A DNA stretch of 64,000 nucleotides from Tubulanus polymorphus. Taxonomy: Eukaryota > Animalia > Nemertea. Below, in pieces: positions 10,787 through 63,585 of the stretch (the stretch's first letter is position 1; every line of letters begins with the position of its first letter). The notes under the pieces are model-generated. The model ran no database searches. It had not been told where the DNA came from and was given only the letters and a program-made list of their open reading frames with translations. The stretch covers positions 6,360,914-6,424,913 of the forward strand of contig NC_134034.1 of the NCBI RefSeq assembly GCF_964204645.1. Direction: 5' to 3'. The position numbers and the translations under genes are program-made.

Positions 10787-11818
10787 CAGTGGACAGCAGC
10801 TACGAAACATTTCAAACTACTACATTATCATTCCATCTATTCATGTATATATAATATGATATGATATCTTCTTTGTTCAGTTTAAAAGTCTTGATCGTAA
10901 AAGTTTGACAAGTCTCGCATGTTGGTACCGATACGCACGTTCACGCGAGTGAAATGTGCACGTTACAGGCTCAAATGTGCACGTTACAATTACAAATGGA
11001 AACGTTGTTCGTTCAAAACCCTACGTAAAAATCTTATGCATTTTAGCGGAATTTCAAAGTTAGCTCGCTACCTACAACAAAAATCGGACAAGACTTTTTC
11101 AAGCGACAAATTTAAATATAAGAGTTAGTAGTACTAACGAAGGATTCACTAAACATATAAATTACTTATGGGGGTTCTGGTTAGCACTGGTAACTGGTCT
11201 GTACTGGTCAAGCATTGGTCAGTTAAACAATTCTTAGATTAATGCCCACATCATATCTAGTTATTTGACACCAAACAACTTAATTGTTTGCAAACAAATA
11301 ATTTACTATATGGTCAGTACTGGTCATGCATTGGTCAGTTAAAAGACCATGGTCCACGCCACATTTGATACCAAACATGATTGGATTGTGTCGTTTCGAA
11401 AATTTATCTGTTGGGCAATTTGTGGTCAGCCCTGGTTCGTTAGGTTCTTATTTTGCGGGCATTTTTTCTCGAACCACCGAAGGACAGAATCACTAATTAA
11501 TTCACCAGATCGTTAATTGCTTAAAATGAAGATTAGTGTTTAACTAATAGTCCTTGTCTGAACAAAATGTCTCTGGTATGGGTCCTATGGAATCATGTCC
11601 TTAACTGTACACCGTACTGTATCTTTGTACTGTATCTTTTTATGTTCACTACCATCGTAATTGACTATGATGTTTTCAAGTGGTCTTAAGTACCGCTAAT
11701 AGCCGAAAGTCGTTGATTTATGTGAAATTTACATACAGCGCCACCCGTTGATAGTAAAACTAACCCGAGCAATACGGGTGTTAAATAGATACGCTAGCAA
11801 ACCGGCATTCTCATAATG
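10787..11818 (-). mobile_element. CATTATGAG-family element, subfamily 1 (upstream of SARNP)
   Basis: Reverse complement aligns end-to-end with 62198-63585, for example the ORF-track peptides at 10919-11128 and 63188-63421. Terminus CATTATGAGAATGCCGGTTTGCT followed by an ACCCG..CGGGT hairpin. Confidence 0.8.
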
Positions 11819-11985
11819 AGCACCCAGCGAGTCATCATGTGACATTATTTTCCGAAGATACAAGAGCTAGTAGAAACGCTGTTATACATACACCCTGTCA
11901 CACATCTATGACATAAATTATGTTTGATAATTATGGGGTATTGAAAATATATGTCATTTAATTCTGAAAAAAAAAAATTTCCTCC

Positions 11986-12039
11986 TAGACTGGTTACCGG
12001 TCTCCATCTTCAATTATAATGGGACAGGCAACCAGTCTA
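11986..12039. repeat. 54-bp TA-flanked mini-hairpin element in SARNP promoter
   Basis: TAGACTGGTTACCGGTCTCCATCTTCAATTATAATGGGACAGGCAACCAGTCTA, 52/54 identical to 61924-61977. Confidence 0.85.
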
Positions 12040-12099
12040 AACATCCTCCAAAGGCGTACTCTTTTATGACCTCCGAAGTCTCCGTCAGAAATCTCCGGT

Positions 12100-12300
12100 T
12101 GGCTCCACACAAAATCCGAATCACACCACCTCGACAGAAAGGAGGTTTCGGAGACTCCAAAAAGTCACGTGACCAATAAAAGAGTACGATTGGAGGCAAA
12201 CGGATTCTCCGATCTGATAAAACAGTTCGCCCCAAGTCACCGATTTCTTCGTAAATTTAGTCCGTTGCCTTAGTCCGAGACCCGCATTCAATATGGCGAC
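12100..12300 (+). promoter_or_regulatory. SARNP proximal promoter
   Basis: CpG-richer stretch with palindromic E-box GTCACGTGAC (12164-12173) abutting CCAAT, a reverse CCAAT (ATTGG at about 12189), and a YY1-like AATATGGCG overlapping the start codon. Confidence 0.55.
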
Positions 12301-15300
12301 TACTATGGACATTTCGAAAATGAAGGTTTGTTGATCGTTTCTTTCGAATCCTCGAATCCTTAGGCCTATATTTCCTTTCCTATTTTACCACCTATACAAG
12401 CTCCTGTATTTTTCATTCCGGATGACTAAATTCAGTCATAACCAGAAAAAGTACCATTAACACGGGTAGGCCTAGTCTTGTGTAGTAGTCTTTATATGGT
12501 ACCTAATTCAATTCAATATTTTATTGGAAGTGCATATTTTCATTTAAATCACGATTTAGGTATAGCAATACCAACTACGAGGTATATGTTGCCTAGAGAT
12601 GCAAATTCTGTAAAATTTGCTCTCCTTCAAGCACAAAATATGTTCATCTGATAAATAAATCCTCATTTTGAACAAAATATTGTCGAAGTGGATATTAAAC
12701 CGTGGCCTATGGCAAAGTATTTACTTCCGCTCTTTTACCGTACATTATTACTATATATATAGTATTAACTAATAGAATTAACAATTAAATCATTATATTG
12801 GGTTTAAGGTAGTCTAATGTCTATTTCAACCTGACTTGAGAGCATTCCTGGTGGCCTAGCTCAGTCAGTTTTGGTAGTACATACCTGATAGAAGTCTTAT
12901 TAGGAACAGAATGCATTGGCATATGACCTAAAATATCGTTTTTTAATCCACTTTAAACTGTATTGAAGGATATCCAGAAAATCTGCATTGAGAGGGGTTC
13001 CTGAGAGAAAAGAGACTCCATGATTTCAAAGTTTAACAATATGTCTCCATGCCTACCAAGTGAAGTTTGGTACGTAGGCATGGAAACATATTGTTAAACT
13101 TTCAAATCCTGGAGTCACTTCTTTTCATTTAACCCGTGGAGACTTTAAGGATATCCTTCAATACAGTTTCGAATTAATTAAAAAATGATGATTTAGGTCG
13201 ACTGCCTGTCCTTTCTGGTCCTATTAAGACCTTTGTCAGGTATGTCCCACCAAAAATTGGCGAGCTAGGCCACCGGAATGCTCTCAAGTCAGGTTGAAAT
13301 AGACATTAGTACCTAGCCGTTGTTCCTCAAACAATGTCTAGGGCGAAAGTGCTCATATAAGGTTAATTTTCGTCCCTCATTTTGAGGGATGAGGCTTTGA
13401 GCGTCTATTTCACCCCTTAGGCCTAAAGCACCCTCAACTTACCTCAAACTGACTGTTCTGTAATCAGATGGAAGTTAACTATTGTTTGTGCATAAATTTG
13501 TAATCCTAAGTAGCTCTGACGATCGTAGTAGCTCAAAACTTTTGACTAGTCACCTCAAAAATCAGTTGAAGTGAAGCACCATAACAAATATGGCGGCTTT
13601 TCGTGGTGCATGGTGGGAGTGTAAATAACAGATTCGGACTTAAACTTGGACTGACATTGATGCCAATGCAGATATCATTCTTGTTTCAAATACTTATGGT
13701 TAAAATTGACCAAAATTGATGCGCTTTATCAACAAAAAATAACATATAGAGTTATTTTAGAGAGATTTATTGAGTTTTCACATTTCATTCATTTAGTCCG
13801 TATTGGAAATCCCGATAGTGGCAATCACTACAATTCAAATCAAATCAATAAATTCTCCGGTTCGTGATTTAAATCATCAAAAATTTGGTAAGGTGAGGTA
13901 CTATAGATAGTTAAAACATTTGGGTGGTTTTCAGCGAGCTCGGTGGTTTAGTGGTATGACGCTGCGCTAGTAATTTACTGGCCCGGGTTCGAGTCTCGCT
14001 CTATTTTATCTATCCCTGATCTCCACACTCTACTTGAATTTTGGCTGATTTACACCGCACAGAGGTGCACGACTTTACGATTTAAGGATAGTGTGGAGCG
14101 AGATCAGAGTTCAATCAATTTGAATTCGATAAAATTGTCCAGATCGAGAGGAATTCGGACCTGGCCCAGCGTATTCCTAGCCCAACTTTTTTCCACTAGT
14201 AGACCACCGAGCTCCTTGCAATCCAAGCGTAAGTTTTAATTACATAGGCCTATAGCACTGAACCTTACCAGTCCCTATCCTTAGGGGTAAAATGGACCCT
14301 TACCCTCTAGACCCTAACCCTAACGAAACCCTGTCCCTAATCCCAATATAGTGATTTTATTGTTACTTTTATTAGTCCACTTGGGAATTTAGTCCCAGCG
14401 GGCTATTGCGTTCACTTTTCGTCCGTCGTCCATCCGTAGACGGAATCTAGCTATTTTGCTAAGTTTTGAAGACGCTTCAAGGTAATGTCTTGATATTTGG
14501 TTAATACATGTATCTACCCTAGACACATCTTCAGCCCAAAAACTGGCCCTGTCAGAATCAAGATGACCGACTGGCAGCCATTGTTGTTCGCCAAAATCAG
14601 CACTTTTTACATGTTTTTGAAATTTTTTAGGGAAATTTTGAAGACGCCTTGATCTTTCGTATATATTTGTAAATTTTAAAATTTAACGCCCCTCAGAGTG
14701 TCTGAGACAGAAAATCACACTGGAATTTATGAAAAGTCACAGATGGTTTTAATGCTGGACACCAAATATTACAATAAATCTATCAACGAAAACTGGGCGA
14801 ATGGCTCAGTTACTATGATGGTTGTCCATTTTTTGAAAAAACTGACGACGACCTACGCACTGGAGAGAATGAATGCATGAACACTTACATGCAGATTTTT
14901 TAGAAAATAAAGCGAGACGATTTTGAAGCGTAAAATCTATTTTGATGAAATCAAATGGTTTTGATGAAATCAAATGGGACATATAAGATATTTTACAAGC
15001 AACAGCGCCGAGGCGGCGCGGCGCGTAGTGAGAAGAACATGCCTCAACATGTGGCTTAGTTGTAGTTTTCCAGGAAACCAGGTACTAGGCACTTGGCCAG
15101 GGATATGAATACATTATCACACTCACGTTGAGGCTGACTATCACCGCTACATAAGACTTTGATGTGTTACCTTTACTCAGCTCAAAGAAAATCCTACTAG
15201 ATATATATGACACAATATCAATGATGCAGTCAACAAAAATGTATATAAACTTCATTTGTACATACATTTATTGATGATCCACAGATGCTAAACAAACTTT

Positions 15301-18300
15301 ATTGATCAGAGACACGTGCCATATGCAGCGCGCGCTCGTAGATACTGATAGTAGGCTCCGAACGCTGAGCTGCCAATCATTGTAGAGACCGCCGTTATCT
15401 TAGAAGTTGGCTACGTTCCAACTACTAGAACATTTCACGCATCCGATTTCACAACTTTGTCGGCACACGGTGATTTAGCTTCCCGTAAATTACGCATACC
15501 ACAACAAAACCGAAAAAAAATTTAAGCAGGGCAGTAAAAACATTAGGCAGGGCGGCATTAAATTTTAGCAGGGCGACTCGCCCTGCTAAAACAGCCCATA
15601 GAGAACACTGCTTTTAAGTGTCCAAAAATGTCAATTTTGGCCCGAATTCTGAGTCCTGTAGCTTCCTACTGGTTTGCCATTTCTCATTGCAATTGCTGAT
15701 GGGTATTCTTTGGAAAGGGTTGTTTTAAACCTGAGACCGGTATTTTTGATCAGCCAATTATGATGTCATTGGCGGTTATCTTGGTGTCATCAGTACTCAT
15801 TGGTAGGTGGGAAAAAGTTTTTCGACATTATATTGACATATAACTGGCTATAATATGACTGGCTACACACCCACTGCTGCTGTTGGTCTCCTTACCGGTG
15901 GCAATGAAATGCCGTCGGTGAATTTATTTCTATTATTGCCGTAGGTGATATGAATAACCCGCGGCACACCTGGTTCACAATATAGGTCAGCCGTCAATCA
16001 CCCGCAGTTCTTGACGCTGCATTATAAGGCTGGCTTATGTCGACAAGCAACGCGACGCCTACCGACGCAACTGGGTTTATCGCCGATTAGCGGCCTACGA
16101 GAGGCCGCCAGTTGCTCCTCAATCGGTTCGACATAAGCCGGCTTGCGGCGGCAACGCAACGCCTACCGACTCGTCGCAAGCCGTATCCGGCTAGTTGCCC
16201 ATGTTCTACTCCGGCCTACGGTAGGTGGGCAGTTGCTTTCGATCACAGCCGACATAAGCTCATCTGCGACGCGACGGAACTGAGCGCAGGGGTTCCAGCC
16301 AATGAGAGACCACATATACATAGTTAAAATTATCACCGCTAGTTAGTCATTCGTAATTAGTCATAAACTTTCAAATTCAAGTTAAAAGTAAACCAAACCT
16401 TCAGCACAGCAGAGGACTGGACCGAAGATCTAGAAACGAAATTGGTAGAATTATGGTGTGAGCGGCCATCTTTATAGATGTCGCTAGCACGTTGTATTCA
16501 AAACAGAATCAGAAAGATCAAAGTCTTAAAGAAATAGCTTTTCTAATAGAAATATATTTCCTAATAATTCAAATTTATTCGCAAAATGCTTATCACGTGA
16601 CCATTTGAGCCGTTGCAGTTGCCAGTAATCGTAACCGACATAAGCAGGGAAGCAACTGGGAGGATCTCGTATCCCGATAGTCGGCCTCAGTTGCTGCGAA
16701 TCGGAGCGCAGTCGACATAAGCTGGGCTGGGATCGCGGTTGTTCTCAGTTGCATCGGTAGGAGTCGGTAGGCGTCGCGTTGCTTGTCGACATAAGCCAGC
16801 CTATAAAATATAAATTAGCGCTGCCACTTGACCTGTTTATCTAACTTCAGTCAGAGCTCCATCCAGATTTACTGATAAAAACAATGCCCAGCATACATCT
16901 ATAAGAAATACGGGCGGCGTCAGCAGTGAGCCGTGCGTGTGTCTGTGTATATAGGTTTCAATAATCGCATGTATACAACAGTCACGGGGATGAATAGACA
17001 CATCAGCTCGGCGACTATTGTGCTTCGTGTTTTTCAGCCTCTTACATCCTCAATTAAGACAAACGAATTGACAAATCAGTGAATTAAATTATCTGACGAA
17101 GGGTAATTGGGCGAGTTTCATTAGATCTAACTTATGTATTTTTAGGCTAAAAACTGCCATTGGCTTAAATTCAGCATTATCCCCTTCAAATTTGTTTAGT
17201 TTGGAATGGTTTTATCTTTTATTAATTTTATGATTTATTACTAGGCCTACCTTGAACCTAATTTGTATCACATCTTAATAAAATAAGTATCTTTGTTGTT
17301 CTGGATTCTCTCACTCTTTCTATTTAATCAATAACTGACATTGTATTATTTAAGTACCCCTAGCATGCCTTTAATTAGTTTTTAGTTTGTAACTCTTTTA
17401 TTCCTTTTATTCTACCCCTGTGTAGAATATTATTTAGAAGTTTTATTCATTCTGTGTCAAATTTTTTGCCGTGGGTTTTTCGATTTACGGAGGCAAATTG
17501 GGATTCTAAAATGCTGATGGTCTTTGGTAAAATGCTCTTGCTCCAGGTCTGATTTTCCCAAATTCGAGGCCTGCTGTATGGTCACCAGGGGGCGTTGAAT
17601 AGTAGAATAACCTAGTATTTCCTTATTATATTGGTACCTAGGCATATTTTGTTACCATGATCAATTGCAAAGTTGTAGTTCATGACATGTTCTATCATTG
17701 TGGTGAGTTACAAGGTTATTGGGTTTTGAATATGGTCACCAGGGGGCATTGAATAGTAGAATAACATATATTTTCGTATTAGATTGGTGACAAGGCATAT
17801 TTTGTTTTCACAATCAATTACAAAGTCGTAGCTGCTGACATGTTCTATGATTGTGGTGAGTTTCAAGGTCATTGGTTTTTGTATATGGTCACCAGGGGCG
17901 TTGAATATTGAAATTGTTAGAATGTTGAGCATTTGAAACCACTTCTTAAGGAGGCATGGTGTCCCTGGACCCCTAGTTAGTTTTATGATATATAGGGTAC
18001 GGTCAAATTGTGGAAGTAAGTACTTTGCCATATGGGCCTACGGCTAAATATCCATTTCTAATAGGCCTATAAGATATTGCGCTTTGATCGATGCATCATT
18101 TGTTCATTAGGAAACTTGATTCAGCCCTTGTTTTTACGTTGGAGACTATGGGCCAGTTGCTCAAAAGTTGGTAAAAGATAACCATCCGTTAAATACCATA
18201 GTAACAATGAAATTTCAATTGTCACCATATCAGCTATCCACTAGTTAACTCTAACCAACTTTTGAGCAACCGGCCCCATATAGGTAGGCCTATTGTATGT

Positions 18301-21300
18301 AGTAAAAATCCACAGGGACTTGTCACATTGATAGTGAAAACCAGTATCAATGACCAACCCAATATCCTTGTATAGGAAAAACAAGGATGGCAACTAACTG
18401 ACTTATCGTCAATCTGAAAATTACCTCTCCACTTCAATCGCCTGGAATTCTATGTCTGCTATTCTTCCATTTCCAGCATCCAGCATTGTTGTTTTCTACT
18501 GACTTTGCCGAGCGGCGGTCATATGAAATGGTCCAACTTTTCAATTCTTTTATAAAAAATTGCCCGAAATGTTCCTTTCAAATAGCCTCGAAAAGCCTGA
18601 AATTCAGACTGGCCTGGAAGCTATGAACCATGTCTAGCATGATATTTCAGTATTTGGTGTTAAGGCATTTTTGGTTGGCCTTCCACAATCAATTGCTTAA
18701 TTGTTGCTCATGTCATGATTGTTGCTCATGTCAATTTGATTATATTGAGTGTCCAGGTCATTGGTTTACCGGTATGTTGAATATTTGTCGAGCATTTGAC
18801 CAAGTGGGCATTTCTTCATTCCTTATATTTAACCTATTATTTTACCTAACATTCAGAATTATGCACCAGTCAATGGAAGTCCCGTCCTACGGGGGCTGGG
18901 AAAGGAAAATTAGCGACCCATAGCACCGAACAGAGGTGATCCAGAAAAAAAAAAAGAATAGATCGCATACCGGTAACAGCGCAGCTTTTGCCACTAGTCC
19001 TTGTGTACGGACCCAATCCACAGCGTCAAATAGCGCCGATGTCCTCTCCCACAATGTCGACCCATAGCGATTCACAGCGCTAGCTAGTGCCATCTTCAAC
19101 CACAAACTTTTTATTTCCATAAATTCATATTTTTACCGTTTTTAAGAGCTCAATGAGATCACTTTTTTCAAACATTGGTTTGTAATATTTTTCTGATGAT
19201 ATCATTAAATCTTGACAAATCGTACTAAAAGTAAAATGTGTTTTCGTACTGAAAAGTGTTAATGAATAAATCTTGAAATGATTATGAAATTGTATAAATT
19301 TTAATGGAGAAAACTATGCTGAATACATGCTAAAGCTTTTTACAGTAAACCTCGCACAAGTCGGATCATTTGGGACCAGGCAAGCAAAAAAAATCTGAGT
19401 TAGAAAAAATCCGACTATGGGCAAGTCGGCTTTTTTACTTTTTAGCTCCGCTGTGATGGAAGGAGCTAATGGGTTAGTGTGTGAGCCGTCGTTGTCCGTC
19501 TGTTTGTTCGTACGTGTGTCTGTCAACTTTCTCTTCAAATCGCTCCTAGTCCTACATTTTTTCAGAGTTTCCATTTCTTCAAATCGCTATTTTTCCTACA
19601 GTTTTAATCAGATCAATTCCAAATTTAGTGTGAATGTTCTATGGACCTAGGCCTATAAAGTCAATGAGCAATTTTTAGCCCACTTGGGACTTTAGTCCCA
19701 GCGGGCTATTGCATTCACTTTTCGTCTGTCCGAAGACGGAATCCAGTTATTTTGGGAAGTTTTGAAGACGCTTCAAGGTAATGTCTTGACATTTGGTTTA
19801 TAAATGTATCTACCCTAGACACATCTTCAGCCCAAAAACTGGCCCTGTCAGAATCAAGATGGCTGACTGGCAGCCATAGTTGTTCGTCAAAATCAGCACT
19901 TTTTACACTTTTTGAGGGAAATTTTGAAGACTCTTGAAAAAATAACCTTGGTCTTTCGTATATATTTGAATCCCCCAAGGACCCATCACCATAAGAAAAA
20001 TTTGGTCGATTGGACTCAAGATGGCTGTCCTATGACCTTTTTACTGCCCAAAAATTGTCAATTTTGGCCCAAATTCTGAGTCCTGTAGCTTCCTACTGGT
20101 TTGCCATTTCTCATTGCAATTTGTGATGGGTATTCTTTGGACAGGGATATTTTATACCGGAGCAAGGTATTTTTGATCGACCAATTATGACGCAATTGGC
20201 GGCCATCTTGGTATCATCTTGGTATCATCAGTACTCATTCGTAGGTGGGAAAAAGTTTTTCCACATTATTTTGATACCTAAGCATATTTTGTTACCACAA
20301 TCAATTGCAAAGTTGTAGCTCATGACATCGTCTATGATTGTGGTGAGTTTTAAGGCTATTAGTTATTCTATATGGTCACCAGGGGGCATTGAATAGTTGA
20401 ATAACTTAGTATTTCCTTATTAGATTGGTATCTAGGCATATTTTGTTACCATGATCAATTGCAAAATTGTAGTTCATGACATGTTCTATGATTGTGGTGA
20501 GTTTCAAGGTCATTTGGTATTGCATATGGTCACCAGGGGGCGTTGAATAGTAGAATAAGTTAGTATTTCCATATTAAATTGGTAACGAGGCATATTTAGG
20601 CATATTATGTGATCACAATCAATTACAAAATCGTAGCTGCTGACATGTTCTATGATTGTGGTGAGTTTCAAAGTCATTGGTTTTTGTATATGGTCACCAG
20701 GGGGCATTGAATATTGAAATGGTTAGATTGTTGAGCACTGGAAACCACTTCCCAAGTGTGCATGGTGTCCCAGGACCCCTAGTTTGGATTCGTCCCCCTG
20801 GGGGTGGAGTTTCTATTATTTTCAAATCGCTACTCGTCCTACAGTTTTAATCAGATCAATTCCAAATTTGGTATGAATGCTCTATGGACCAAGGCCTATG
20901 ATGTCACTGAGTCATTTTTTTATTCGTCCACCAGGGGGTGCCCCTGGGGGTGGAGTTTCTATTTCTTCAAATTTCTATTAGTCTTACAGTATAATCTGAT
21001 CAATTTCAAATTTGGTATGAATGTTCTCTGGACCAAGGCCTAGAAAGTTACCGAGCCATTTTTTATGGATTCGTCCCCCAGGGGGGCGTCCCTGGGGATG
21101 GAATTTCTTCAAATTGCTACTTGTCCTACAGTTTTAATCAGATCAATTCCAAATTTGGTATGAATGTTCTATGGACCCATGCTTATGAAGTAACAGAGCC
21201 ATTTACGGAGTTACGGAGCCATTTTTTTGGATTCATCCCCCAGGGGCGCCCCTGGGGGTGAAGTTTCTATTTCTTCAAATTGCTACTAGTCCTACAGTTT

Positions 21301-47797: not shown

Positions 47798-48234
47798 TAG
47801 TCAACCTCGCTTAATTTGTATCTCTTGGGACTGTGTTTTTTCTACGAATTAGACATTATACGGATTATACATAATTCGTACTTTCAATGATTTTCAATTT
47901 TTCTATTATCATGTAAATTATTTCTCGAATAAAAACCTGGCGGGAAAATTTCGTGTGGCTGTGGCACGCTTAATGCCAATATGACTGACAAGTTATTGAT
48001 AAGCTTGCCAATCACTGCTGGCAGCGGAACAATGGGATACGAATTACGCGTTGCATTTCCAATTGTTTTTAAGAAAAGGGACCGTGGCAACGACTACGAT
48101 TTACGAATTACTAAGTACGAATTATCCGATGAAGATTAAAGGGAATAATGAAGGAAATAATCAGGACCCTTCATTTTTATACGAATTAGGTAGTTATACG
48201 AATTAACCAACTACGAATGAAGCGAGGTTGACAG
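47798..48234. mobile_element. Tc1/mariner-like MITE
   Basis: AGTCAACCTCGCTT and AAGCGAGGTTGAC ends, TACGAATTA repeats, TA flanks. Confidence 0.7.
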
Positions 48235-49756: not shown

Positions 49757-50344
49757 GGCCACACCAAAATAAAATCCCGTTTCTCGGGCGGGGCAATCAC
49801 CAAAATGGGTAGGTAGGTATGACATTTTTTTTTTCTTTTTATAGAAAAAAATTGTTAATTCTTCTATCAGTGGGTAGGTTGCCGCAAATAATTTCTACTG
49901 GACTCAGGAATATGATTAACAGCTAGTAGACCACAATTATAAAAGGAAATTGAGGTGTTTGTACAATTAACTATAAAAAAATATATTTTGAACATATTTC
50001 ACGGAATTCATGGAATTTTACAATCCAAGGCCGGCATCAAAGTCCGATAAGCAAAGTTGTCCGAGCATGGCTGCGCAATTTCCAGAATCAAATTTTAAAT
50101 CCGATATAATAAGATGTTTTTATGATGTTGATCTCAGTGCCGACGTCACGATTTGATTTAAAAAATATTTACGAGAAAGGAGAGTTTGGTAGTCGGTCGG
50201 CCACATATATATTTTTGTTATTTCACCCAAAATTTTGAAAAAGGGTCGGTAGGCGGTTATATTTTATTCTGAAAATGATTATTTGAAATGGGGAAATATC
50301 CGGTCGGTCGGGCCAGAGAAACAGGGTTTTCTTTTGGTGTGACC
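49757..50344. mobile_element. Harbinger-type MITE, TAG TSD
   Basis: TAG|GGCCACACCAAAA..GTTTCTC ... GAGAAAC..TTTTGGTGTGACC|TAG. Same architecture as 31451-32026. Confidence 0.8.
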
Positions 50345-50706
50345 TAGGCCTAGCTACTTTTTGCTATGGCCCGAAACTTCATTCACTCTATGGACGCACA
50401 GTGAACGCAGATTCTACCAAAAAACGATTTTTTCCTCGAACTTCATAGATGCCCAATTTGTTTTTACAATGAAAAACATTCCTTTTTCACCAATTTCAAC
50501 TAGTCAGTTGCTATTAGTCAAAAACTGATTTATTAAGTCATGATATGAACTTCAATAAAACTATCACAGACTCCTATACTTCCATATAATCAAATAGAAC
50601 ATGAATTTCAATTAAACATATATTTACATTCTGCTTTTTCATTTCATTTAGATTTTAAAAATAAATACATGTAAATGTCAATAAGACACATAATATTCCT
50701 TACAGA

Positions 50707-53700: not shown

Positions 53701-56700
53701 AAATTGATTTCTCTCGCGAAAAATGAAACATTTGTTTCTAATCCTCCGGGAATATCGAGTACCGGGAATCTAGGGTTCAAAATAAGCAGCGCAGCAGTAC
53801 TTCAACAGTGGTACCGAGTTCCGTATTTGGTGAAGAAGGGGCGGAAATTGATGTTTTTGCCGACCACGATGTTGCTGCTACTCGAGCGAGACGCCATGCC
53901 GATCTGCCGCGCAATTTTACGACTCTTACGCGACTCTCACCAATTTGATTTAAAAAACTTATTTCAGTCCTGCGGCTAGGATCGTGCAAGAGCGTAATTC
54001 TCCAGGATTCAAACCTGCGCGCTGGCCGCGTTTGTTATCATGAATTCGCTCCCGTTGCTAAGGGAATTTCAGCTCGTTCAATCAACGCAGTTCATTGTTA
54101 AACTATTCATCGACCCAATCTTATTCTAAATTTCATTAAAATAAATAAATTCTGAAATAACCTGATCCATAAGTTACCGTATTTTAGTCAATCGGCTGCC
54201 TGATTTTAGGGTGACGTAATTCTACTTCCGATTTCCCCATGAGCTTCAAACCAGGCGTCAAGTGATGTCATTTTTTTCTGACTATGTCAGATAGGCCTAC
54301 TGTTTCTCACACATGCTCTCCATGCGACGTTTTGGTCCGTAGTTTCGTTAATAACCAGTTGATCTGTGAATATTATGCATGAATTTGTTCAGTTCAATTT
54401 TTAGTGCCAAATCAAACCTTTGTACTAAAATGAATAAATTAGTTACCTTGTTGACTTTGAAAACGTGTTTTATAATAATATTTTTATTGATTTAAATCGC
54501 GAACTGGAGAATTTATTGATTTGATTTCAATTGATTGCCATAATCGGGATTTTCAATGGACTAGATTAATAAAATGTGAAAATTCAATATGTCTCTCTAA
54601 AATTACTCTAAATTTTATTTTTTGTTGATAAAACGCATAAATTTTGGTCAATTTTAACCTTAAAAAATATAGCTGCAAAGCAGCGATAACGGGTTTTCTG
54701 CACAGTCTTAGAATCCTGTTCAACGGTGGATTTCGACAAAGCATTTGATAAGGCACAACATCAGCCATTACTAAACAGGCTATTAGGAAACAGTATCAAT
54801 GATAGGTCGCTCAAATGGCTCAGCAGTTATTTCTGAACGAAAACTTGTAGCTGAAATCAACAGAACATCTTGGAATAAGTCGGTCTAACTAGTGGTGTCA
54901 CGCAAGGTGGTATCCTAACTCGTCTTCTGTTTGATGTCCTGACAAATGACATAGGCCTACTCAGTAATCTAAAATATACCAGACCGAGTAAATGTCCAAA
55001 ACGACCTTAACACGCCGTTCGACCAAAAAACTTAATGTTCCGACAAGAAAATATTGTTCCAATGAAAACAATTCTGTTTGATCGAACAATACGCTTTTTG
55101 TTTGAACCAAAACTTTTCTTCATTCCGACAAAAAATGAAAACCTTTTTGTCCCGGAAAAAAATTTGGTTGAGCGAAAACAATTTTTTTAGAATGAATGTT
55201 TGAATGAAAACAATTTTGTTCGATTGAACGAAATACTTCATACTTTTGGTTCGGAGGAAAAACTTTTTACAATTTACTTGTTCGAACGAAAAACTTAATG
55301 TCCTGACAAGAAAATTCTGTTCAAATTAAAACGATTGTTCGAACAAAAAACCTTTTGTTTGGACAAAAAAAAATTCTAACAATTTTTTTCAAATTGGTTC
55401 AATCGAACGGAATATTATTGGTTCGAACGAAATAAATTTTGTTCCGACGAAAGAATTTTCAAGCGAAAGGTCTTATGAACTAAAAAAAAAGATAATTCTG
55501 GGGCTCCGCGGTAACTTAAAGCGGGACGTAGGTCGGCCATGTGACGCGATGCGATCCTCACGTTGCATCGCAAGTTTCGGTGCAAGTCGGTTGCGATACG
55601 ATTGTCAGTGACTGTGTGCGACTAGTTTCTGCCAGTCGCAAGAGCGCGTAGGTCGGTTGTGACAGTCGTGTAGCGTCGCAGAAAGTAGAACATGTGCGAC
55701 TCCTTGCGACTGGCGTTGCTGACAGTCGCAACCTGTCGCAAGAGCGCGTAGGTCGGTTGTGACAGTCATGTAGCGTCGCAGAAAGTAGAACACGTGCGAC
55801 TCCTTGTGACTGGCGTTGCTGACAGTTGCAACCCGTCGCAAGGGAGTGTAGGTCGATGAGTCGTTGCGACACAATCGTCGCTGGCGATCACTGTGAATGG
55901 TGTCGCAGTGAGTCACAAGCCGTCGCAAGGCCGACCTACGCCCTGCTTAAGTCATTAGGAATGAATGCGAATGAAAAACCAGTTTCATTTATCATGAAAA
56001 TACTCAAATGAGAAGTCTGGCTTATAAAGCTATCTGCTCAGACGAAATTTTCAAAAAAAATCTTCATTTTTGGCAATAAAATTGATAATTGGGATTGATT
56101 GTTGCAAGTCAGAACCAGTTAATCACTAATTAACATGCATTTTAATAAATCTGATTCCTCCTATACAGTGAACTTAGCATTAACCTAGTAGAGGCTACTA
56201 GCCTATGTATAGGCCTAACATCTGGACAGATTGGCCGTAGGCCTATTAAATAACAACCCTCCTAAATATCGTAAATTTTGTTTTGAAGTTCAACCCAATG
56301 AGTCCTTTAATAAACGCAACAATAATACTGTGTTTGTTTGAGACAGTAAAGGTCAGTGCCGGTAGGCCTAAAGCCTTAAGGTCGTGTAAAACTCGATAAA
56401 CACTTCAAGCGACACAGCGAACGATCTCCTTTCCCCCATGGCGAACGCTTACTCTGAATGTCAAGTGTGAGTCCAGCATACGGATAGGAGTGTGTTATAT
56501 ACTTGTATTTAGTAAATACCTTGTGCATTTGACAATGATCTGTATGTACTGTAGGAAATATAGAGTATTGATGGTATTGATTTAGAGGTTGAGGCCTGCG
56601 GCCGAATTAAGTAATATATTCTTTTTTTGTTACCTCGTCGACACAACAGCTTTTCTCCGCTATATCTCTTCGGCGTGTTTAGTTTAGGCCTGCGAGTCCC

Positions 56701-59700
56701 CGGTACACTAATGATTTATCTTAGTAAATACACTGTTTAATTTGGTAAAGAAAAATAGGTATTGTTAAACTAACTGCTTGAAGCCTGCGGCCAAATCACT
56801 GGTAGTAATAAATATATTTGTACTCGACTTGATTCTCACGATGAGGAGAAACTCGCAGCTGATCCCCGGAACGACGATATAAACACGTCGATTCGTCGTT
56901 GTTTACGGCTCGACAGTGCTTTTAAAATCTAAAGTAGTAAATTTCCTGTGTATCGGTAATATGATTTGATGAGGAAAATGGGCTATTGTTAAAATTAGTT
57001 TTTAAAAACCGCGACTGAATGTGCAATCTTTGGGTAATAAATTTGTAAATTCATGCTTGAATTGATAATCGACGTGACAAGAAACGTGCGGTAGATTTTG
57101 GAAAGACGACTTAGAAAAACATGTCGGCTCTTTGAATGGGGCTCAATCTTTTATGTTTACGGCCCGACAGTGCTTTTTTAACGATGATTCGTGAAAAAAC
57201 ACGCGATGTATTTGTAGATCTCGGTGAGCTGAATGATATCATTGGGATTGTATCGACAACAGCGGCAAGGTAACAAAGCCTTTGTTCTTTTAGTGAAAAT
57301 AGTGTGACATAAAATAATAATAATAAGAAACGCGCGAATCTCAATAGGGTTTTCTGTGATGTAACAGAAAACCCTAAGTATAGCTGCAAGCAGTGATAAC
57401 AGGTTTCTGCCTTTCTGGATAGAATGTCGTTCAGGGATGCGAGCAAAGATTTCACCCGAAATCAGTTCGTTACATTCCATTTTTTGAAAGAGTGCCACCT
57501 AGGGGTCAACTCACAACATGGATATGTTGACCCACATGTGCTATACGCGCATGTGCTACTACGCGCAAAGTACTTATGTGCCAGGTTTTGGGGGAAATAA
57601 CATCGAGAAGAACGAAGCTACGGTGTTTTTACCATTCCCTAGTAGTGACAGTTTAAGCACATATTCGGTTTTTATTAGTTCCGAAAAAAGTCGACTAGAC
57701 AAGAAAACCGAATTTGGCCCAAAGCACAAATTTGGCCTATAATAGGGTAAACTATGCAGGAGGGAAGGCCTTAGTGTTACTATTAGTAGAGGAGTGACAA
57801 GTCAGTCTGACAAGTCAAGCGATCAGATGGGGACTACAATTCACATATGAAATTGACGTCCAATAACTATTATAAAAACGTAATCACGAACGGTACCATC
57901 ACTCCCCATTACTGACTGTCACTGGTCTCTGGCTCGCAATCATTCTTTATCGGTGCAGTGGGTAGGTATTTTCAACTGACTTTGTTCTTCTATGACATTA
58001 CCATCGCCGCTGCGTCACGATGTGATGTACATGGACCTCCAATTTGTAATGTATGTGATGTATTAACTGAATTTAGACCGTTTAATATCGACGATAACAA
58101 GGTTTCACCGACGCTGACATTTTCTGACGCTAACTAGTATGACCCGTCTTTTGGACCGGACCAATTCAATTCAATTAGGAAAACGTGTACCGGTACAATA
58201 AATAAATAAACCGCTGATATCCACGAACAAAACTATACTATTATAGAATGTTTAAAAGGAACTGCTTTTAATAACAGTCTGAATAAACTTACTTCACAAA
58301 CAAGGAAGTACATTTTTAACTTGTGAATGGTCGAACCCCAGTTATTCACAGTAACCTGTGATTTGGATATTCTCGGAGCCTTCCTTCTTTATTTATTAAT
58401 GAAATGACGTCACAAACTTTCAGATTCGCGCCAGTATGCGCGCCATGATCGATGATTGCTAATTCCACCGGTGCTATCTTTAAGTAACTTCAAGTTTGAA
58501 ATAGGAAGCACAGTACATCCATAGAAACTACGCGCAGAAAGAGACTGTTATATTATCATCACTGTTTAACATTTCGTTTCAAAGTTGTTAGTAGTCAAAT
58601 CTAATAGAAGATGATTTTTATGTGACGAAACTCAGTGGAAAATATGTTAAAATAATAATCAGCAGGAATGCCGAGGCAGCAGAAACCCTAATAATAATAA
58701 TAATCACGTGAATCTCAATAGGGTTTTCTGTGAAGAAACAGAAAACCCTAATAATCACGCGAATCTCAATAGGGTTTTCTGTGATGTAACAGAAAACCCT
58801 AATAATATCTGCATTGGCATCAATGTCAGTCCAAGTTTCAGTCCGAATCCGAAAAGCCGCCATATTTGTGACGGTGCTTCACTTGGTGCTTCACTCATTT
58901 TTAAGCGACTAGTCAAAAGTTTTGAGCAACTACGATTGTCAAAAGCTACTTAAGATTACAAATTATCTGATTACAGAACAGTCAGTTTGAGGTAAGTTGA
59001 TGTTGTTTTAAGGGGTGAAATAGACGAAAATTAACCTTATATGAGCACTTTCGCCTTAATGTCTATTTCAACTTGACTTGACAGCATACCGGGTGGCCTA
59101 GCTCAATCATTTTTGGTAGTGCATACCTGATAAAAGTCTTATTAGGACCTGAAAGGACTGGCAGTGGACCTAAACCATTAACTCTTAATCCATAGAAACT
59201 GTATTGAAGGATATCCAAAAAAGTCTTAACTGAAAGGGGTAAGATAAAGAAATTTGACTCCATGATTTGAAAGCTTAACAATATGTTTCCTAGTCTGAAT
59301 ACCACTAGTCGTTGTTACGGTTCTGTACAATGTCTGACGCTAAAGTATCATACACCTATAGAGGTTAACTCCTGTTAATTGCAATGCAACAACTGATTTT
59401 AGTGTCAAATCAAACCTTTGTACTAAAATAAATAAATTACTTACCTTGTTGACTTTGAAAACGTGTTTTATAATAAAATTTTTGATGATTTAAATCGTGA
59501 ACCGGAGAATTTATTGATTTGATTTTAATCGAATTGATTGCCACTATCAGGATTTCCAATACGGACTAAATTAATAAAATGTGAAAATTCAATATGTCTC
59601 TCTAAAATTACCCTAAATGTTATTTTTTGTTGACGCATAAATTTTGGTCAATTTTAACCTTAATAATTTGAAACAAGAATAATATCTGCATTGGCACCAA

Positions 59701-61799
59701 GTTTAAGTTCGAATCCGTAATTTACACTCCCATCATGCACCACGAAAAGCCGCCATATTTGTTATGTTGATTCACTTCAACTGTTTTTTGAGGCGACTAG
59801 TCAAAAGTTTTGAGCTACTACGATCGTCAAAAGCTACTTTGGATTACAAATTTATGCACAAACAATAGTTAACTTCCATCTGATTACAGAAGAGTCAGTT
59901 TGAGGTAAGTTGATGGTGTTTTAAGGGGTGAAATAGACGCTCAAAGCCTCGTCCCTCAAAATGAGGGACGAAAATTTACCTTATATGAGCACTTTCGCCC
60001 TAATGTCTATTTCAACCTGACTTGAGAGCATTCCAGGTGGCCTAGCTCAGTCAGTTTTGGTAGTACATACCTGCTAAAGGTATGTACTAAGAAAAATGAA
60101 GAGAAGTGGTTCCATGATTTGAAAGTTTAACAATATGTTTCCATGCCTACATACCAAACTTCAGTTGGTATGCATGGAGATATATTGTTAAACTTTCAAA
60201 TCATGGAGTCTCTTTTCTCTCATTAACCCCTTTCAGTGAAGACTTTTTGGATATCCTTCAATACAGTTTCAAATGGATTAAAAAATGATGATTTAGGTCG
60301 ACTGCCCGTGCTTTCTGCTCCTACTAAGACCTTTATCAGGTATGTACTACCAAAAATGAGTGAGCTAGCCCACCTGGAATGCTCTCAAGTCAGGTTGAAA
60401 TAGACATTAGACGTTGTTTCAGGAACAACGGCTAGGTACTAGACTATATGTTTCCATGCCTACACACCAAACTTCATTTGGTAGGCATGGAAACATATTG
60501 TCAAACTTTCAAATCATGGAGGTAGTCTCTTTTCTGTCATGAACCCCTTTCAATGCAGACTTTTTGGATATCCTTTAAAACAGTTTAAAATGAATTAAAT
60601 AACGATGTTTTAGGTCCACTGCCAGTGCTTTCTGGTCCTAATAAGACATTTATCAGGTATGTAGTAACAATACTGACTGAGCTAGGCCACCCGGTATGCT
60701 CTCAAGTCAGGTTGAAATAGACATTAGACGTTGTTTGTAGAACGACGGCTAGGTACTACTGTCTGTCACACCTGCACGAATCACAGGGGCTCGTATCAGA
60801 GTTGTAGGTAATGTAAAAACGATAATCTGTGCATTGCGCATTTGAAGCCCTCGACCATCAAAATCGGTGAAGGATTTCGTGTCGAACTCAACGTTTTAAA
60901 TTTCGAAATCGGCAAAAACCGGCGTCATAGCATTTTCGGTCCAGACGATTTCGGCCCTAATTTCGCGTTCAAAGACATATAATTCACGAACTATTCATCG
61001 GAAATTAACGGGATTAGTTTCGTTAGAAGCAGGAAGGTATTAGCTTTCATATCATGCCTGGATTACGGTCATCCTTATTACCGAGATGACGTATTTTACC
61101 GAGATGAACCGAGATAAAATGAAATATAACATATTTATTTATTCCTTATCGATTTTAACCATTGAAATCATATTATATCAGTAATAAATGCCTGCTGGAG
61201 TCATATTTTACATATTTTGTCGGATATTTTTGTAGAAAAATAACTTAACTTTACCAAGATGAGATCGTCGATCAATCAAATTCAATGAAATTTTATTGCT
61301 AACCGAGTTTACGTATTTGAAGTCAAAATTTTTTTAAATAAAAAATATATGTAAAATATGACTCTAGAAGGTATTTATTACTGATATAACATGATTTCAA
61401 GTGTTAAAATCGATAAGGAATAAACAAATATGCTATATTTCATTTCATCTCGGTTCATCTCGGTAATAAGGATGACCCCTGGATTATCAAAATCGGATGA
61501 AAAATAACGAAAAAGTAAGCGACTGAAGTTGAGTAGTTTGTGAGCGTCGTTAGCCCTCTTGTTATTTTATATATACTATATACATTCGATTAACAGATTA
61601 TCGTTTTTACATTACCTACAACTCTGATACGAGCCCTGTGGCACGAATAATGCTGAATTGGCAATTCCCGAAGTGGTGAATTTGGGCCACACTGGTCACA
61701 CATTATATTATATACGATATTCACATACCGTGGGTCCTTCGCGATTCTTTCCGGATCTCTTGGTATAAGATTGTAAATACTTTCGTTTGTTGATGCCAT
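50707..61799 (-). CDS. ENKUR: Enkurin, 253 aa, 4 coding exons
   Basis: Exons 61799-61729, 53140-52995, 52221-51998 and 51027-50707 are GT-AG with phases 2/1/0 (762 nt). Motifs ESIYNLIP, KTMGPAKV, FLKKH, RKPPVP, KNFITTNA, LEPSGLVPKY, DFGKTPLYL, GLKTNWEELHHQYQGLSVVTDT, MKQLERDIEMIEKH. Confidence 0.96.
53165..53370 (-). mobile_element. HINE1-like 3' fragment in enkurin intron 1
   Basis: CCACTTGGGAAGTGGTTT..GCTCAAC..TTTCAATATTCAATGCCCCCTGGTGA is the reverse complement of the HINE1 3' unit. Confidence 0.7.
53455..54277. mobile_element. MITE with ~80-bp TIRs
   Basis: TGACGTCACTTGACG..CATGGGGAAATCG.AAGTAGAATTA.GTCAC.CTAAAATCAGGCAGC and its reverse complement at about 54195-54270. Confidence 0.75.
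54398..54663 (-). repeat. Repeat B fragment
   Basis: Direct match to 59396-59662 and inverted match to 13698-13880. Confidence 0.8.
54729..54980 (+). pseudogene. Non-LTR retrotransposon (CR1/L2-like) RT fragment
   Basis: DFDKAFDKAQHQPLLNRL..LKWLSSY..TSGVTQGGIL..LLFDVLTND with frameshifts. Confidence 0.75.
55010..55470. repeat. Degenerate A/T-tract tandem repeat (GTTCGAACGAAAAA-like)
   Basis: Recurring TTGTTC(G/C)..(G/C)AAAA motifs. Confidence 0.55.
55520..55947. mobile_element. Harbinger-type MITE with ~100-bp internal tandem repeats, TAA TSD
   Basis: TAA|AGCGGGACGTAGGTCGGCC ... GGCCGACCTACGCCCTGCT|TAA. Confidence 0.85.
58681..58804 (-). repeat. Tandem HINE-like hairpin heads (also 57313-57378)
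   Basis: AATCTCAATAGGGTTTTCTGTGATGTAACAGAAAACCCTAA repeated. Confidence 0.65.
58800..60757 (-). mobile_element. Cluster of repeat B / P1 MITE / hairpin H copies in enkurin intron 1
   Basis: B 58800-59058, P1 half 59057-59290, B 59396-60002, P1 60001-60409, H 60410-60439, P1 half 60446-60726, H 60727-60756. Confidence 0.85.
60782..61640. mobile_element. Non-autonomous element with ~50-bp TIRs and 8-bp TSD (P- or hAT-superfamily)
   Basis: TSD GCACGAAT (60774-60781 and 61641-61648). TIR CACAGGG(G)CTCGTATCAGAGTTGTAGGTAATGTAAAAACGATAATCTGT. Confidence 0.9.
61066..61478. mobile_element. Palindromic MITE nested in the above, 8-9-bp TSD
   Basis: GGTCATCCTTATTACCGAGATGA and TCATCTCGGTAATAAGGATGACC, flanked by (C)CTGGATTA. 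Confidence 0.85.
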
Positions 61800-61854
61800 T
61801 GTCGTCGATACTGGCTTCCCTCAAAACGTAGAATGGCAGAATGAAGGAGAGCGA

Positions 61855-61915
61855 AGTGTTTGTAAATATATTAAATGGCGTCCTGCTGTCGCTATGGGTA
61901 CCAGGTGGCAGCACC
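61855..61915 (-). promoter_or_regulatory. Enkurin promoter: X-box-like and forkhead-like sites
   Basis: GTCGCTATGGGTAC (61888-61901) resembles the RFX X-box. TGTTTGTAAATA (about 61857-61868) contains forkhead cores. CRE TGACGTCA at 62090-62097. Confidence 0.5.
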
Positions 61916-61923
61916 TCACATGA

Positions 61924-61977
61924 TAGACTGGTTACCGGTCTCTATCTTCAATTAGAATGGGACAGGCAACCAGTCTA
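61924..61977. repeat. 54-bp mini-hairpin element in enkurin promoter
   Basis: 52/54 identical to 11986-12039. Confidence 0.85.
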
Positions 61978-62197
61978 CTCACATGATGCCGGTTAGACTG
62001 CATCCTCGCTTGCCAGGGGTAAGGTATCACTCCCGAACTCGCTTCCACCAGCCCCCTGGCCTCACGAAGCGTGATCTCATTACTGGCGCTGACGTCATAT
62101 ATTGATTTGCGAAATACTTCCTTGTTCAGTAAAACGTTCACTGAATGGTCCATTTAACGGGAAAACCAATATAAGCCTAAAGTCGTTTGTTGGTACA

Positions 62198-63585
62198 CAT
62201 TATGAGAATGCCGGTTTGCTAGCGTATCTATTTAACACCCGTATTGCTCGGGTTAGTTTTACTACCAACGGGAGGCGCTGTGTGTAAATTTTACATAAAT
62301 CAACGACTTCCGGCTATTAGCGGTACATAAGACCACTTGAAAACATCATAGTCAATTACGGTAGTAGTGAAAATAAAAAGTTACAGTTCGTTGTACAACA
62401 CCATAGCACCCATATAATACCACATACATTTTATTCAGACTAACGACTTAGTTAACACTGATCTTCATTTCCATTAATTAATGATCTGTTGAATTAATTA
62501 GTAATCCAGTCTTTCGGTGTTCGAGATAAAATGCCCGCAAAATAAGAACCAACGAACCAGGGCTGACCACAAATTGCCCAACAGATAAATTTTCGGAAAC
62601 GACACAATCATGTTTAGTATCAAATAACTCGTGGCGGTGTGGACCTTGGTCTATTAACTGACCAATGCATGACCAGTATTGGCTATATAGTAAATTATCT
62701 GTTTTGCAAACAATTAAGTTGTTTGGTGTCAAATAACTAGATATGATGTGGATATTAAACTAAAAATTGTTTAACTGACCAATGCTTGACCAGTACTGAC
62801 CAGTTACCACTAACTAGAACCCACCATAAGTAATTTATATGTTTACTTAAGCAATAAAATCGTGTTTGGGCGTCGAGCTACTAGATACGGTGCGGGCTAT
62901 GATCTAACAACTATTTAACTCACCAATTATTTACCAATACTGACCTTAAAGTAATTTGTTTATTCTAGAAGCAACACAGTCGTGTTTGGTGTCAACTAAT
63001 TAGAAATGGTGTGGGCTTTCATCTTACAACTATTCAAGTGACCGAATCTTGACCAATACTGATCACATAGCTATATGTATCTGTTTCGGAAACAACTTAG
63101 TCGTGTCTCGTATCAAATAATTTCATTAGGTCTGAACGAAAATATAACAACTCTTTTACCTGTACAAGCTACACCAGTACTGTCTAATTACCGGTTAAAT
63201 GTTTTTAGAAATAACACGGGGTATTGCCTGAATCCTTCGTTAGTACTACTCTTATTAAATGTGTCGCTTAAAAAGTCTTGTCCGATTTTTATTGTAAGAA
63301 GCGAGCTAACTTTGAAATTTCCCACTAACTGCAAAAGACTTTCACGTGGGGTTTTGAACGAACAACGTTTCGATTTGTAATTGTAACGTGCGCATTTGAG
63401 CCTGTAACGTGCACATTTCACTCGCGTGAACGTGCGTATCGGTACTATTATGCGAAACTTGTCAAACTTTTGCGTTCAAGACGTTTAAACTGAACACTAA
63501 AGAAGATATCATATCATATATATGAATAACGAATAGATGGAAGATAATGTAGTAGTTTTGAATGTTTCGTAACTGCTGTCCACTG
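62198..63585 (+). mobile_element. CATTATGAG-family element, subfamily 1 (upstream of enkurin)
   Basis: Inverted copy of 10787-11818 with extra internal tandem units (about 62830-63230). Confidence 0.8.

Follow-up and report, generated by a model that had tools for sequence, protein, structure and literature searches.

Separate insertions of a few cut-and-paste transposon families probably account for the matching repeats around the first exons of the convergent SARNP and enkurin genes

Why do two unrelated genes carry the same repeats, in the same order, around their first exons? In the window, as we call the whole 64,000-nucleotide stretch of Tubulanus polymorphus DNA analysed here, SARNP and enkurin are convergent, and inverted collinearity links two arms (approximately 10788-13886 and 59476-63585) through about 12 blocks of 78-98% identity. 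The collinear stretch extends over ~3 kb, the arms lie ~46-50 kb apart, and the collinearity is broken around both first exons. Because the genes converge, the arrangement looks like a mirror image. A sequence-only reading had described one ordered set of repeats around both first exons; the presence and location of these repeats held up, whereas the mirroring did not extend to the hairpin, and the P1 repeat sits at different positions inside the B repeat in the two arms. At both gene starts, nearly everything is repeat-derived except for the exons and a core promoter of ~100-250 bp. The 5' ends of SARNP and enkurin are the only two in the window, in which ARAGORN found no tRNA. The features discussed below are, by position in the window:

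5955-11818, + strand: arm-1 copy of the large TIR element A, 5.9 kb, with CATTATGAG ends at 5955 and 11818
11986-12039, + strand: copy 1 of the 54-bp hairpin, ending 254 bp upstream of the SARNP ATG
12046-12241, unstranded: M190, a young MITE of ~190 bp in the SARNP promoter, between the hairpin and the ATG, with TIRs read from the sequence
12293-12325, + strand: SARNP first coding exon, 11 codons and then a GT donor, read from the sequence
12810-12816 and 13307-13886, + strand: arm-1 B, sense, with the last ~170 bp missing
12817-13306: arm-1 P1, within B at TA, at B position 6-7
22086-22259, + strand: SARNP SAP-domain exon, in a stop-free stretch (Pfam SAP, 6.5e-10)
50734-51021, - strand: Enkurin-domain exon (PF13864; 108.6 bits in the genome search, 1.7e-31 in the Pfam scan)
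58801-60763 (approximate), - strand: outer, older B, split by an earlier P1 (~60724-60456 and 59281-59057)
60446-60408 and 60002-59291, - strand: arm-2 inner B, sense, flanked by a perfect 9-bp duplication, GGAAACATA
60407-60003: arm-2 P1, within the inner B, at B position 40
60795-61630, unstranded: nested MITE pair in enkurin intron 1 (inverted repeat I10)
61065-61466, unstranded: inner palindromic MITE of this pair, 400 bp
61729-61799, - strand: enkurin first coding exon, 23 codons plus 2 nt and then a GT donor, read from the sequence
61924-61977, + strand: copy 2 of the hairpin, with a perfect 9-bp target duplication, CTCACATGA
62001-62191, unstranded: S200, a repeat of ~190 bp filling most of the gap between the arm-2 A end and the hairpin
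62198-63585, - strand: inner 1.4 kb of the older, inverted A of arm 2, 94.3% identical to the copy at locus L001
63586-64000, + strand: start of a young 6.4-kb A nested in the older arm-2 A, 96.7-97.3% identical to the arm-1 A

Exons were searched one by one, and the SAP exon (6.5e-10) and the Enkurin exon (1.7e-31) bear out the view that both genes are real. SARNP is confirmed through its SAP exon, given that PF18592, the Tho1/MOS11 C-terminal domain, had no genome match in the profile search. The region of SARNP exon 1 (12240-12700) is single-copy in the genome, save for one 70-bp snippet, and that of enkurin exon 1 (61641-61920) is unique; the two are unrelated, in agreement with the earlier statement that the first exons are not one duplicated 5' end. 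A Pack-type transduplicating element with captured first exons was also considered, and was ruled out because each exon-1 region occurs once in the genome and is followed downstream by the remainder of its gene. The promoters had been described as unique, but M190 and S200 make them partly transposon. The 40 scored copies of M190, among 446 candidates, are 95-99% identical, and matches to S200 of 87-91% identity lie beside A ends at loci L019 and L020, at differing distances and in both orientations. Copies of the 400-bp palindromic MITE of enkurin intron 1 are 91-98% identical, among 1841 candidates.

The outermost repeat on the promoter side is A. Its CATTATGAG ends lie at 11810-11818 (-) and 62198-62206 (+), 475 bp from the SARNP ATG at 12293 (+) and 399 bp from the enkurin ATG at 61799 (-), so that the proximity to promoters noted previously is real; the supposed “subfamily 1 element”, however, turned out to be merely the last 1 kb of TIR elements of 5-6 kb that lack ORFs. 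In the arm-1 A, the end at 5955 is of the subfamily-2 type and the end at 11818, which faces SARNP, of the subfamily-1 type; the interval between them holds no ORF of ≥80 aa. Full-length copies of A elsewhere in the genome span 3.9-6.7 kb at 96-99% identity. Against 40 scored copies elsewhere, the arm-1 A shows 97-99% identity, and against the arm-2 A 86-89% (~87%); it is a young full-length insertion. The older arm-2 A runs ~9 kb past the window end, to approximately window-equivalent 73000, and the young A nested in it ends at about 69995 on the same scale. The arm-2 A shares 488 derived states with the L001 copy and none with the arm-1 A.

Genome-wide, the A end motif was counted 164 times (0 in controls), with most matches falling in the middle third of chromosomes, and A elements are often nested within one another; 33 of 89 A ends have a neighbour of the same family within 50 kb. 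Among 11 full copies checked for flanks, 9 have one identical base on each side and two of these match at two bases; neither a target duplication of 3-9 bp nor an ORF was found. Assignments of A to P-like, Transib-like or Helitron-like elements, suggested by the end motif, were rejected because 8-bp or 5-bp duplications and Helitron ends are absent. At the outer ends of the A pair that brackets the genes, a flank duplication of 0-2 bp, as in this family, is uninformative.

The next repeat towards each gene is the hairpin, the two copies of which are identical at 52 of 54 positions. It is predicted to fold at -14 kcal/mol (z = -5.7), and one of its arms occurs 1415 times in the genome compared with 0 in controls. 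Both copies are co-oriented on the + strand, with different flanks, and are thus not mirrored between the arms as had been proposed. The flanks of the arm-1 copy match imperfectly, at 8 of 10 bases, and the other copies in the loci examined are fragments. With a TIR start of TAGACT, compared with TAGTCT in B, the hairpin would be a micro-MITE resembling Mutator-like elements.

Downstream of the first exons, P1 and then B follow in gene polarity. B, with ends set from ~20 copies, is a 740-bp element with TIRs and a 9-bp target duplication; the 5' end (TAGTCTAGTACC...) aligns with the reverse complement of the 3' end (TAGTCTGAATACC...) imperfectly over ~23 bp. The duplications were found at the arm-2 inner B and at loci L036, L030 and L039, and these features, TIRs and duplication only, make B resemble a Mutator-like element or MITE. 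There are 145 motif matches to B in the genome (0 in controls), about 0.04% of the genome, and 19 of 83 copies have a neighbour of the same family within 50 kb. The ratio of observed to expected CpG and the GC content around B copies gave no promoter signal, since this genome shows no CpG depletion. Among the copies retrieved, none of the families yielded an autonomous partner or a transposase, MURA-type ones included.

P1 is a near-palindromic MITE of 400-490 bp with TIRs of ~27 bp, flanked by TA on both sides in arm 1, in arm 2 and in composites, which indicates a TA target duplication. Its TIR motif yielded 693 matches (351 forward and 342 reverse; 0 in controls) in pairs ~470 bp apart, corresponding to ~350 elements. 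The order of P1 and then B, reported earlier, stands in both arms, but the insertion points differ: in arm 1 P1 interrupts B at position 7, and in arm 2 at position 40, which argues for separate insertion. At least 7 copies of B carry or abut P1, even though B accounts for so little of the genome; P1 repeatedly targets CTA(G) sites in B ends, and P1 next to B therefore counts as one coincidence, not two. The arm-2 inner B inserted into a P1 that had itself split the outer B. The closest matches of this inner copy elsewhere reach 95.5% identity, compared with 89.4% for the arm-1 B, which also has closer relatives elsewhere (up to 92.4%) and the missing tail of which was not found elsewhere in arm 1. 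Fragments of B also occur at 54399-54666 and 58801-59026, a correction to the earlier description.

Two further loci, C1:16.93 Mb and C5:13.70 Mb, repeat this order and polarity, with B following an A end within 2 kb; on C1-C7, 2 such pairs were observed against 0.13 expected (Poisson p ~0.008). The C5 pair brackets the first exon of a RecQ-like gene with a DEAD-domain exon downstream (1.4e-24). The A-B loci comprise SARNP, enkurin, the RecQ-like gene and a fourth locus, L057, at which no gene was identified. The dynactin-4 start has an A end 305 bp upstream, and the encoded peptide matches residues 7-46 of dynactin subunit 4 (5.9e-5). Altogether, A ends lie 305-475 bp upstream of the ATG in 4 genes (SARNP, enkurin, RecQ-like and dynactin-4). 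First exons were read by eye as ATG-started frames and counted only with PDB or Pfam support: Pfam matched neither the short first exon of dynactin-4 nor RecQ exon 1, and the PDB sequence search matched dynactin-4 but not RecQ exon 1. An ORF scan of the flanks at 50 aa or more returned 270 frames, mostly spurious in this AT-rich DNA. Among unselected copies, 1 of 20 A ends had a recognisable first exon within 500 bp, near the 1-4% expected from gene density, and none of 20 sampled B loci (14 with B alone, 6 P1-B composites) had a confirmed first exon upstream. The excess accordingly rests on the joint presence of A and B at three genes and L057. The proposed targeting of promoter flanks is, then, favoured by the recurrence of A-B pairs and by the RecQ-like and dynactin-4 cases, but not by the unselected copies.

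We favour, with a probability of roughly 0.65, the reading that the two gene starts were separately colonised by the same few cut-and-paste families, which share a preference for 5' flanks. Insertions that occur and persist near genes would be found chiefly where expressed genes have accessible 5' flanks; in a transposon-saturated chromosome domain, where A and B copies cluster near their own family, the same families may be expected to accumulate at the only two 5' ends available. The underlying cause would be a preference either of insertion or of retention, and a retention bias could mimic an insertion bias. An old inverted segmental duplication, or continuing ectopic conversion between the arms of a 50-kb loop, would explain the ~3 kb of collinearity and the similar identities of the blocks (86-90%), but it is very improbable: every copy has closer relatives elsewhere, the arm-1 A is a young full-length insertion, the P1/B junctions differ between arms, the hairpins are direct repeats with unlike flanks, and the exon-1 regions are unrelated and single-copy. 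The tree check of whether the arm copies are sisters gave the same answer, with no derived states shared by the A pair and 7 by the B pair, which ranks 54th among 231 pairs; the B tree is a star, and the paired copies are not closest relatives, contrary to the conversion scenario raised by the sequence-only reading. These comparisons show that the paired repeats are independent transposon insertions, neither a mirrored duplication nor a conversion tract. More improbable still is a composite macrotransposon, in which two inverted A elements moved in as a unit with the 50-kb gene pair; inverted A elements do bracket the genes and their outer ends match, but the two elements are unlike in age and subfamily, and SARNP and enkurin are single-copy genes with first exons that are ancestral.

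Closer to the favoured reading is a true polar frame, in which A and B, through placement or retention, always occupy one side of the gene and point one way relative to its transcription; we regard this as possible, though doubtful. In a subset of genes, such a frame would tentatively comprise a subfamily-1 A end 300-500 bp before the start codon, a hairpin close to the promoter and a sense B near the beginning of intron 1, and, at no better odds for the two taken jointly, it might stem from polar targeting of promoter flanks by at least two unrelated TIR families, for instance through a directional promoter tether, or from selection of the insertions as boundary or regulatory modules. The subfamily-1 end of A faces the gene in 4 of 4 cases (SARNP, enkurin, RecQ-like and dynactin-4), all 3 intron-1 copies of B read in the sense direction, both additional A-B pairs within 2 kb keep order and polarity while pairs 5-9 kb apart do not, and 11 flanks of the opposite A end yielded no recognisable first exon. 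The independent cases, however, number only 2 for the polarity of A (p ~0.25) and 1 for that of B, and with 1/20 and 0/20 in the unselected samples, the fixed side and polarity suggested previously is not sustained. In addition, hairpin polarity is inconsistent, the distance from the A end to the ATG varies, with younger insertions in between, and some first exons were probably missed, as they were recognised by eye and through PDB and Pfam searches. Pure chance in a transposon-saturated region is a less probable reading than the polar frame. The many scan windows make such a coincidence findable, almost all of the sequence outside the exons and core promoters is repeat-derived, the orientation matches alone are worth only ~1/16, and ~3 genes genome-wide would be expected to have an A end within 500 bp upstream in the same polarity, as estimated from the 164 A ends and an assumed 20,000 genes. 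Against chance, if A and B were independent, their joint presence would be expected at ~0.001-0.002 genes genome-wide, and 3 were seen; the A-B pairs on C1-C7 exceed expectation as given above; and hairpin ends lie within 0.5 kb of the A end in 2 of 20 unselected A copies, compared with ~1% expected.

Separate colonisation of 5' flanks has parallels in several known systems. Open chromatin is targeted by piggyBac and Ds, and the present locus resembles the targeting by these elements, and the promoter-proximal precision targeting by the P element and Mu, in that several unrelated families are found at the same 5' flanks of expressed genes; here, however, the copies are fixed and old rather than new insertions, so that selection or retention is inseparable from targeting. 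P1 resembles Stowaway-type MITEs mobilised by Tc1/mariner in its size, TIRs, TA duplication and genome-wide copy number, but differs in its marked preference for CTA(G) sites in the ends of another element. Inverted duplications that form palindrome arms with gene conversion are similar to this locus in having two collinear inverted arms ~46-50 kb apart, whereas the arms described here are mosaics of separate insertions, with no sister copies, differing junctions and unrelated centres. MULEs, including Mu, are similar to B in its imperfect TIRs of ~23 bp and 9-bp duplications, and to the hairpin in its TIR start and in the 9-bp duplication, perfect in arm 2 and imperfect in arm 1. Insertions of Mu, which has a 9-bp target duplication, and of P are vastly enriched near transcription start sites (TSSs) (PMC7337890; PMC2774946). 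Those of Mu peak at the TSSs (PMC7337890; PMC2774946). B and the hairpin lie within a few hundred bp of the first exons at the present locus. The differences from maize Mu are that the host is an animal and that B is located in intron 1, not at the TSS itself.

The SARNP/enkurin locus thus appears to contain neither a conversion loop nor a duplicated gene start, and provides a concrete animal example in which several cut-and-paste families have come together at the same 5' flanks of genes. Of these families, two look Mutator-like; insertion directed to TSSs is well established for Mu in plants and P in flies. If the preference proves false, this is an ordinary assemblage of nested transposons. 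If it proves true, and above all if the orientation rule does, A and B, with ~150 copies each, would be markers of accessible germline promoters in a non-model animal and would provide a handle on how transposases find promoters.

In the window (G000:C10:6360914-6424913 of the 268 Mb, 77-contig Tubulanus polymorphus assembly), a repeat scan detected about 12 inverted collinear blocks of 78-98% identity that pair 10847-13886, around SARNP exon 1 (arm 1), with 59476-63523, around enkurin exon 1 (arm 2), the collinearity being broken around the two first exons. The repeat order around these convergent genes and the distances of the element A ends (475 and 399 bp) were as the sequence-only reading had described. 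SARNP and enkurin are real genes, from searches run one exon at a time by reference; each exon 1 region was single-copy in the genome searched. No further host genes were evident within the window.

Host gene exons and repeats of the two arms (window positions; strand in parentheses)
12293 (+): SARNP start, 11 codons, then GT donor
22086 (+): SARNP SAP-domain exon (Pfam, 6.5e-10)
61799 (-): enkurin start, beginning of exon 1
50734-51021 (-): Enkurin-domain exon (genome search, 108.6 bits; Pfam scan, 1.7e-31)
5955-11818: arm-1 element A, inverted CATTATGAG ends at both boundaries
12046-12241: young 190-bp MITE between the hairpin, which it adjoins, and the SARNP ATG, ~55 bp upstream of the start codon
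from 62198: older inverted A copy of arm 2, broken at 63586 by a nested young copy and resuming past the window
from 63586: young A copy nested in arm-2 A, 6.4 kb

A stop-free stretch at 27929-28279 (+), with an RAARF-type motif at its end, resembles a later SARNP exon; if it is one, SARNP spans at least 16 kb. Arrays of a ~153-bp satellite lie in SARNP intron 1 (17500-30800), inside repeated units 4.3-5.5 kb apart, and another close to 42 kb (41700-42400). By eye only, two ORFs look transposase-derived: 1047-1448 (-), with a pogo/CENP-B-type helix-turn-helix N-terminus, and 38639-39079 (+), a hAT/BED-like fragment.

What had been taken for a whole subfamily 1 element is just the final 1 kb of a large TIR element, A, and subfamilies 1 and 2 are the two differing ends of this single element. 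The end sequence CATTATGAG has four occurrences where 0.73 would be expected, and two of them had already been named from the sequence. Homology of arm-1 A with copies elsewhere extends to the edge of every flank examined, and no ORF of at least 80 aa lies inside it. The 11 full copies are 3.9-6.7 kb long; in 9 of them only one base on each side (sometimes 2 bp) is identical, with no longer target duplication. Element A is commonly inserted into its own kind (loci L001, L005, L009 and arm 2). Facing pairs of the subfamily 1 end motif, 5-7 kb apart, occur at G000:C8:2337770-2342762, 3148757-3155713 and 3527796-3534728, and may be variants with an identical end on both sides or autonomous copies.

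Repeat B is a discrete 740-bp element with TIRs starting TAGTCT and 9-bp target duplications, features by which it appears to fit the Mutator-like pattern; Mu insertion likewise makes 9-bp duplications (PMC2774946). P1 is a MITE of near-palindromic structure that duplicates a TA. The 54-bp hairpin folds strongly and has TIRs starting TAGACT; its arm-2 copy is flanked by a perfect 9-bp duplication, CTCACATGA, and the arm-1 copy has imperfectly matching flanks (8 of 10 bases). The spacers, described earlier as unique, both contain repeats: the 190-bp MITE in arm 1 (scored copies 95-99% identical, out of 446 candidates; some within 2.5-kb tandem units on contigs C5 and C6) and, in arm 2, a ~190-bp repeat that lies between A end and hairpin and also adjoins A ends at two other loci (L019 and L020). 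Enkurin intron 1 carries a nested MITE pair (60795-61630), the inner one a 400-bp palindromic MITE with copies 91-98% identical, out of 1841 candidates. A tRNA-like, SINE-looking sequence (13887-14042) adjoins the truncated end of arm-1 B; ARAGORN called no tRNA there, and a 76% match lies close to the B remnant of locus L058.

Matches of repeat motifs in the whole genome (all controls zero)
A end motif: 164
B 5' motif: 145
P1 TIR motif: 693, equivalent to ~350 elements
Hairpin arm motif: 1415

The mirrored arms had been attributed either to ectopic conversion in a ~50-kb inverted-repeat loop or to targeting of promoter flanks with fixed side and polarity. Conversion, or duplication of one arm from the other, is contradicted by the relationships of the copies, since the paired A and B copies have closer relatives elsewhere and their insertion junctions differ. 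Arm-1 A has 97-99% identity with 40 scored copies versus 86-89% with arm-2 A, which in turn matches a copy in L001 at 94.3%; across 23 aligned A copies, the two arms share no derived states, versus 488 shared by arm-2 A and that L001 copy. The B copies of the arms are 89.4% identical, with identities to other copies of up to 92.4% for arm 1 and 95.5% for arm 2; the tree built for B is star-shaped, and the arm pair, with 7 derived states in common, ranks 54th of 231 pairs. Thus, in neither family are the paired copies each other's closest relatives. P1 occupies the TA at position 6-7 of B in arm 1 versus position 40 in arm 2, where an older P1, which had split an older B, was the target of a complete, P1-bearing B whose insertion left a perfect 9-bp duplication. 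The hairpin drops out as a mirrored component: both copies share one orientation on the + strand and therefore lie in opposite directions relative to their genes. Because the paired copies have closer relatives elsewhere, the P1/B junctions differ, arm-2 B has its own 9-bp duplication and the hairpins are co-oriented, the repeats of the two arms are separate insertion events.

Part of the resemblance comes from how the families are distributed. A and B copies lie mostly in the central third of chromosomes and cluster with their own family: another member of the family lies no more than 50 kb away from 33 of 89 A ends and from 19 of 83 B copies, versus ~14% expected under an even spread across central domains. 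P1 is carried by or abuts at least 7 B copies, in every case at a CTA(G) site of the B ends, despite B covering only ~0.04% of the genome, so that P1 beside B is no independent coincidence. These associations are insufficient as a full explanation, since a gene is very unlikely to have both A and B by chance (~0.001-0.002 genes expected genome-wide, estimated from counts). Comparison of the A-end and B coordinate lists on contigs C1-C7 yielded two further places where an A end is followed no more than 2 kb downstream by a B 5' end of the same polarity, versus 0.13 expected (Poisson p ~0.008).

Further A-B pairs
C5:13.70 Mb (L058): A end, ATG exon 390 bp on, B remnant, RecQ-type DEAD exon (1.4e-24) at 3.4 kb
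C1:16.93 Mb (L057): A end shortened by a LINE; full B 1.75 kb downstream

L058 also retains a hairpin-end remnant upstream of the ATG; no gene was identified at L057. The L057 LINE (L057:1-4560, G000:C1:16926000-16930560) carries endonuclease/reverse-transcriptase and ORF1-like frames; of the A element into which it inserted, only the last 102 bp are left.

This recurrence supports a preference common to the families for the 5' flanks of some genes, or their common retention there; such behaviour is known for Mu and P, whose insertions are strongly enriched close to TSSs (PMC7337890). To this extent targeting of promoter flanks is partly supported; fixed side and orientation are not established, because only one of 20 unselected A copies lies near a start codon (L010, 305 bp upstream of a peptide matching dynactin subunit 4 residues 7-46, 5.9e-5), close to the rate from gene density alone, none of 20 sampled B loci has a confirmed first exon upstream, and the independent tests of polarity number two for A and one for B. 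At the opposite end of A, 11 flanks showed no first exon recognisable by eye. In L018, a ubiquitin-hydrolase Cys-box exon (485-571, -) lies in sense orientation 931 bp past an A end (Pfam UCH 1.9e-4, under the family cut-off).

The mirror image arises from independent colonisation of the 5' flanks of two genes that happen to be convergent, and the SARNP/enkurin arrangement is an ordinary phenomenon of an already known kind. What remains is a modest, testable recurrence of A-hairpin-B frames at a few genes.
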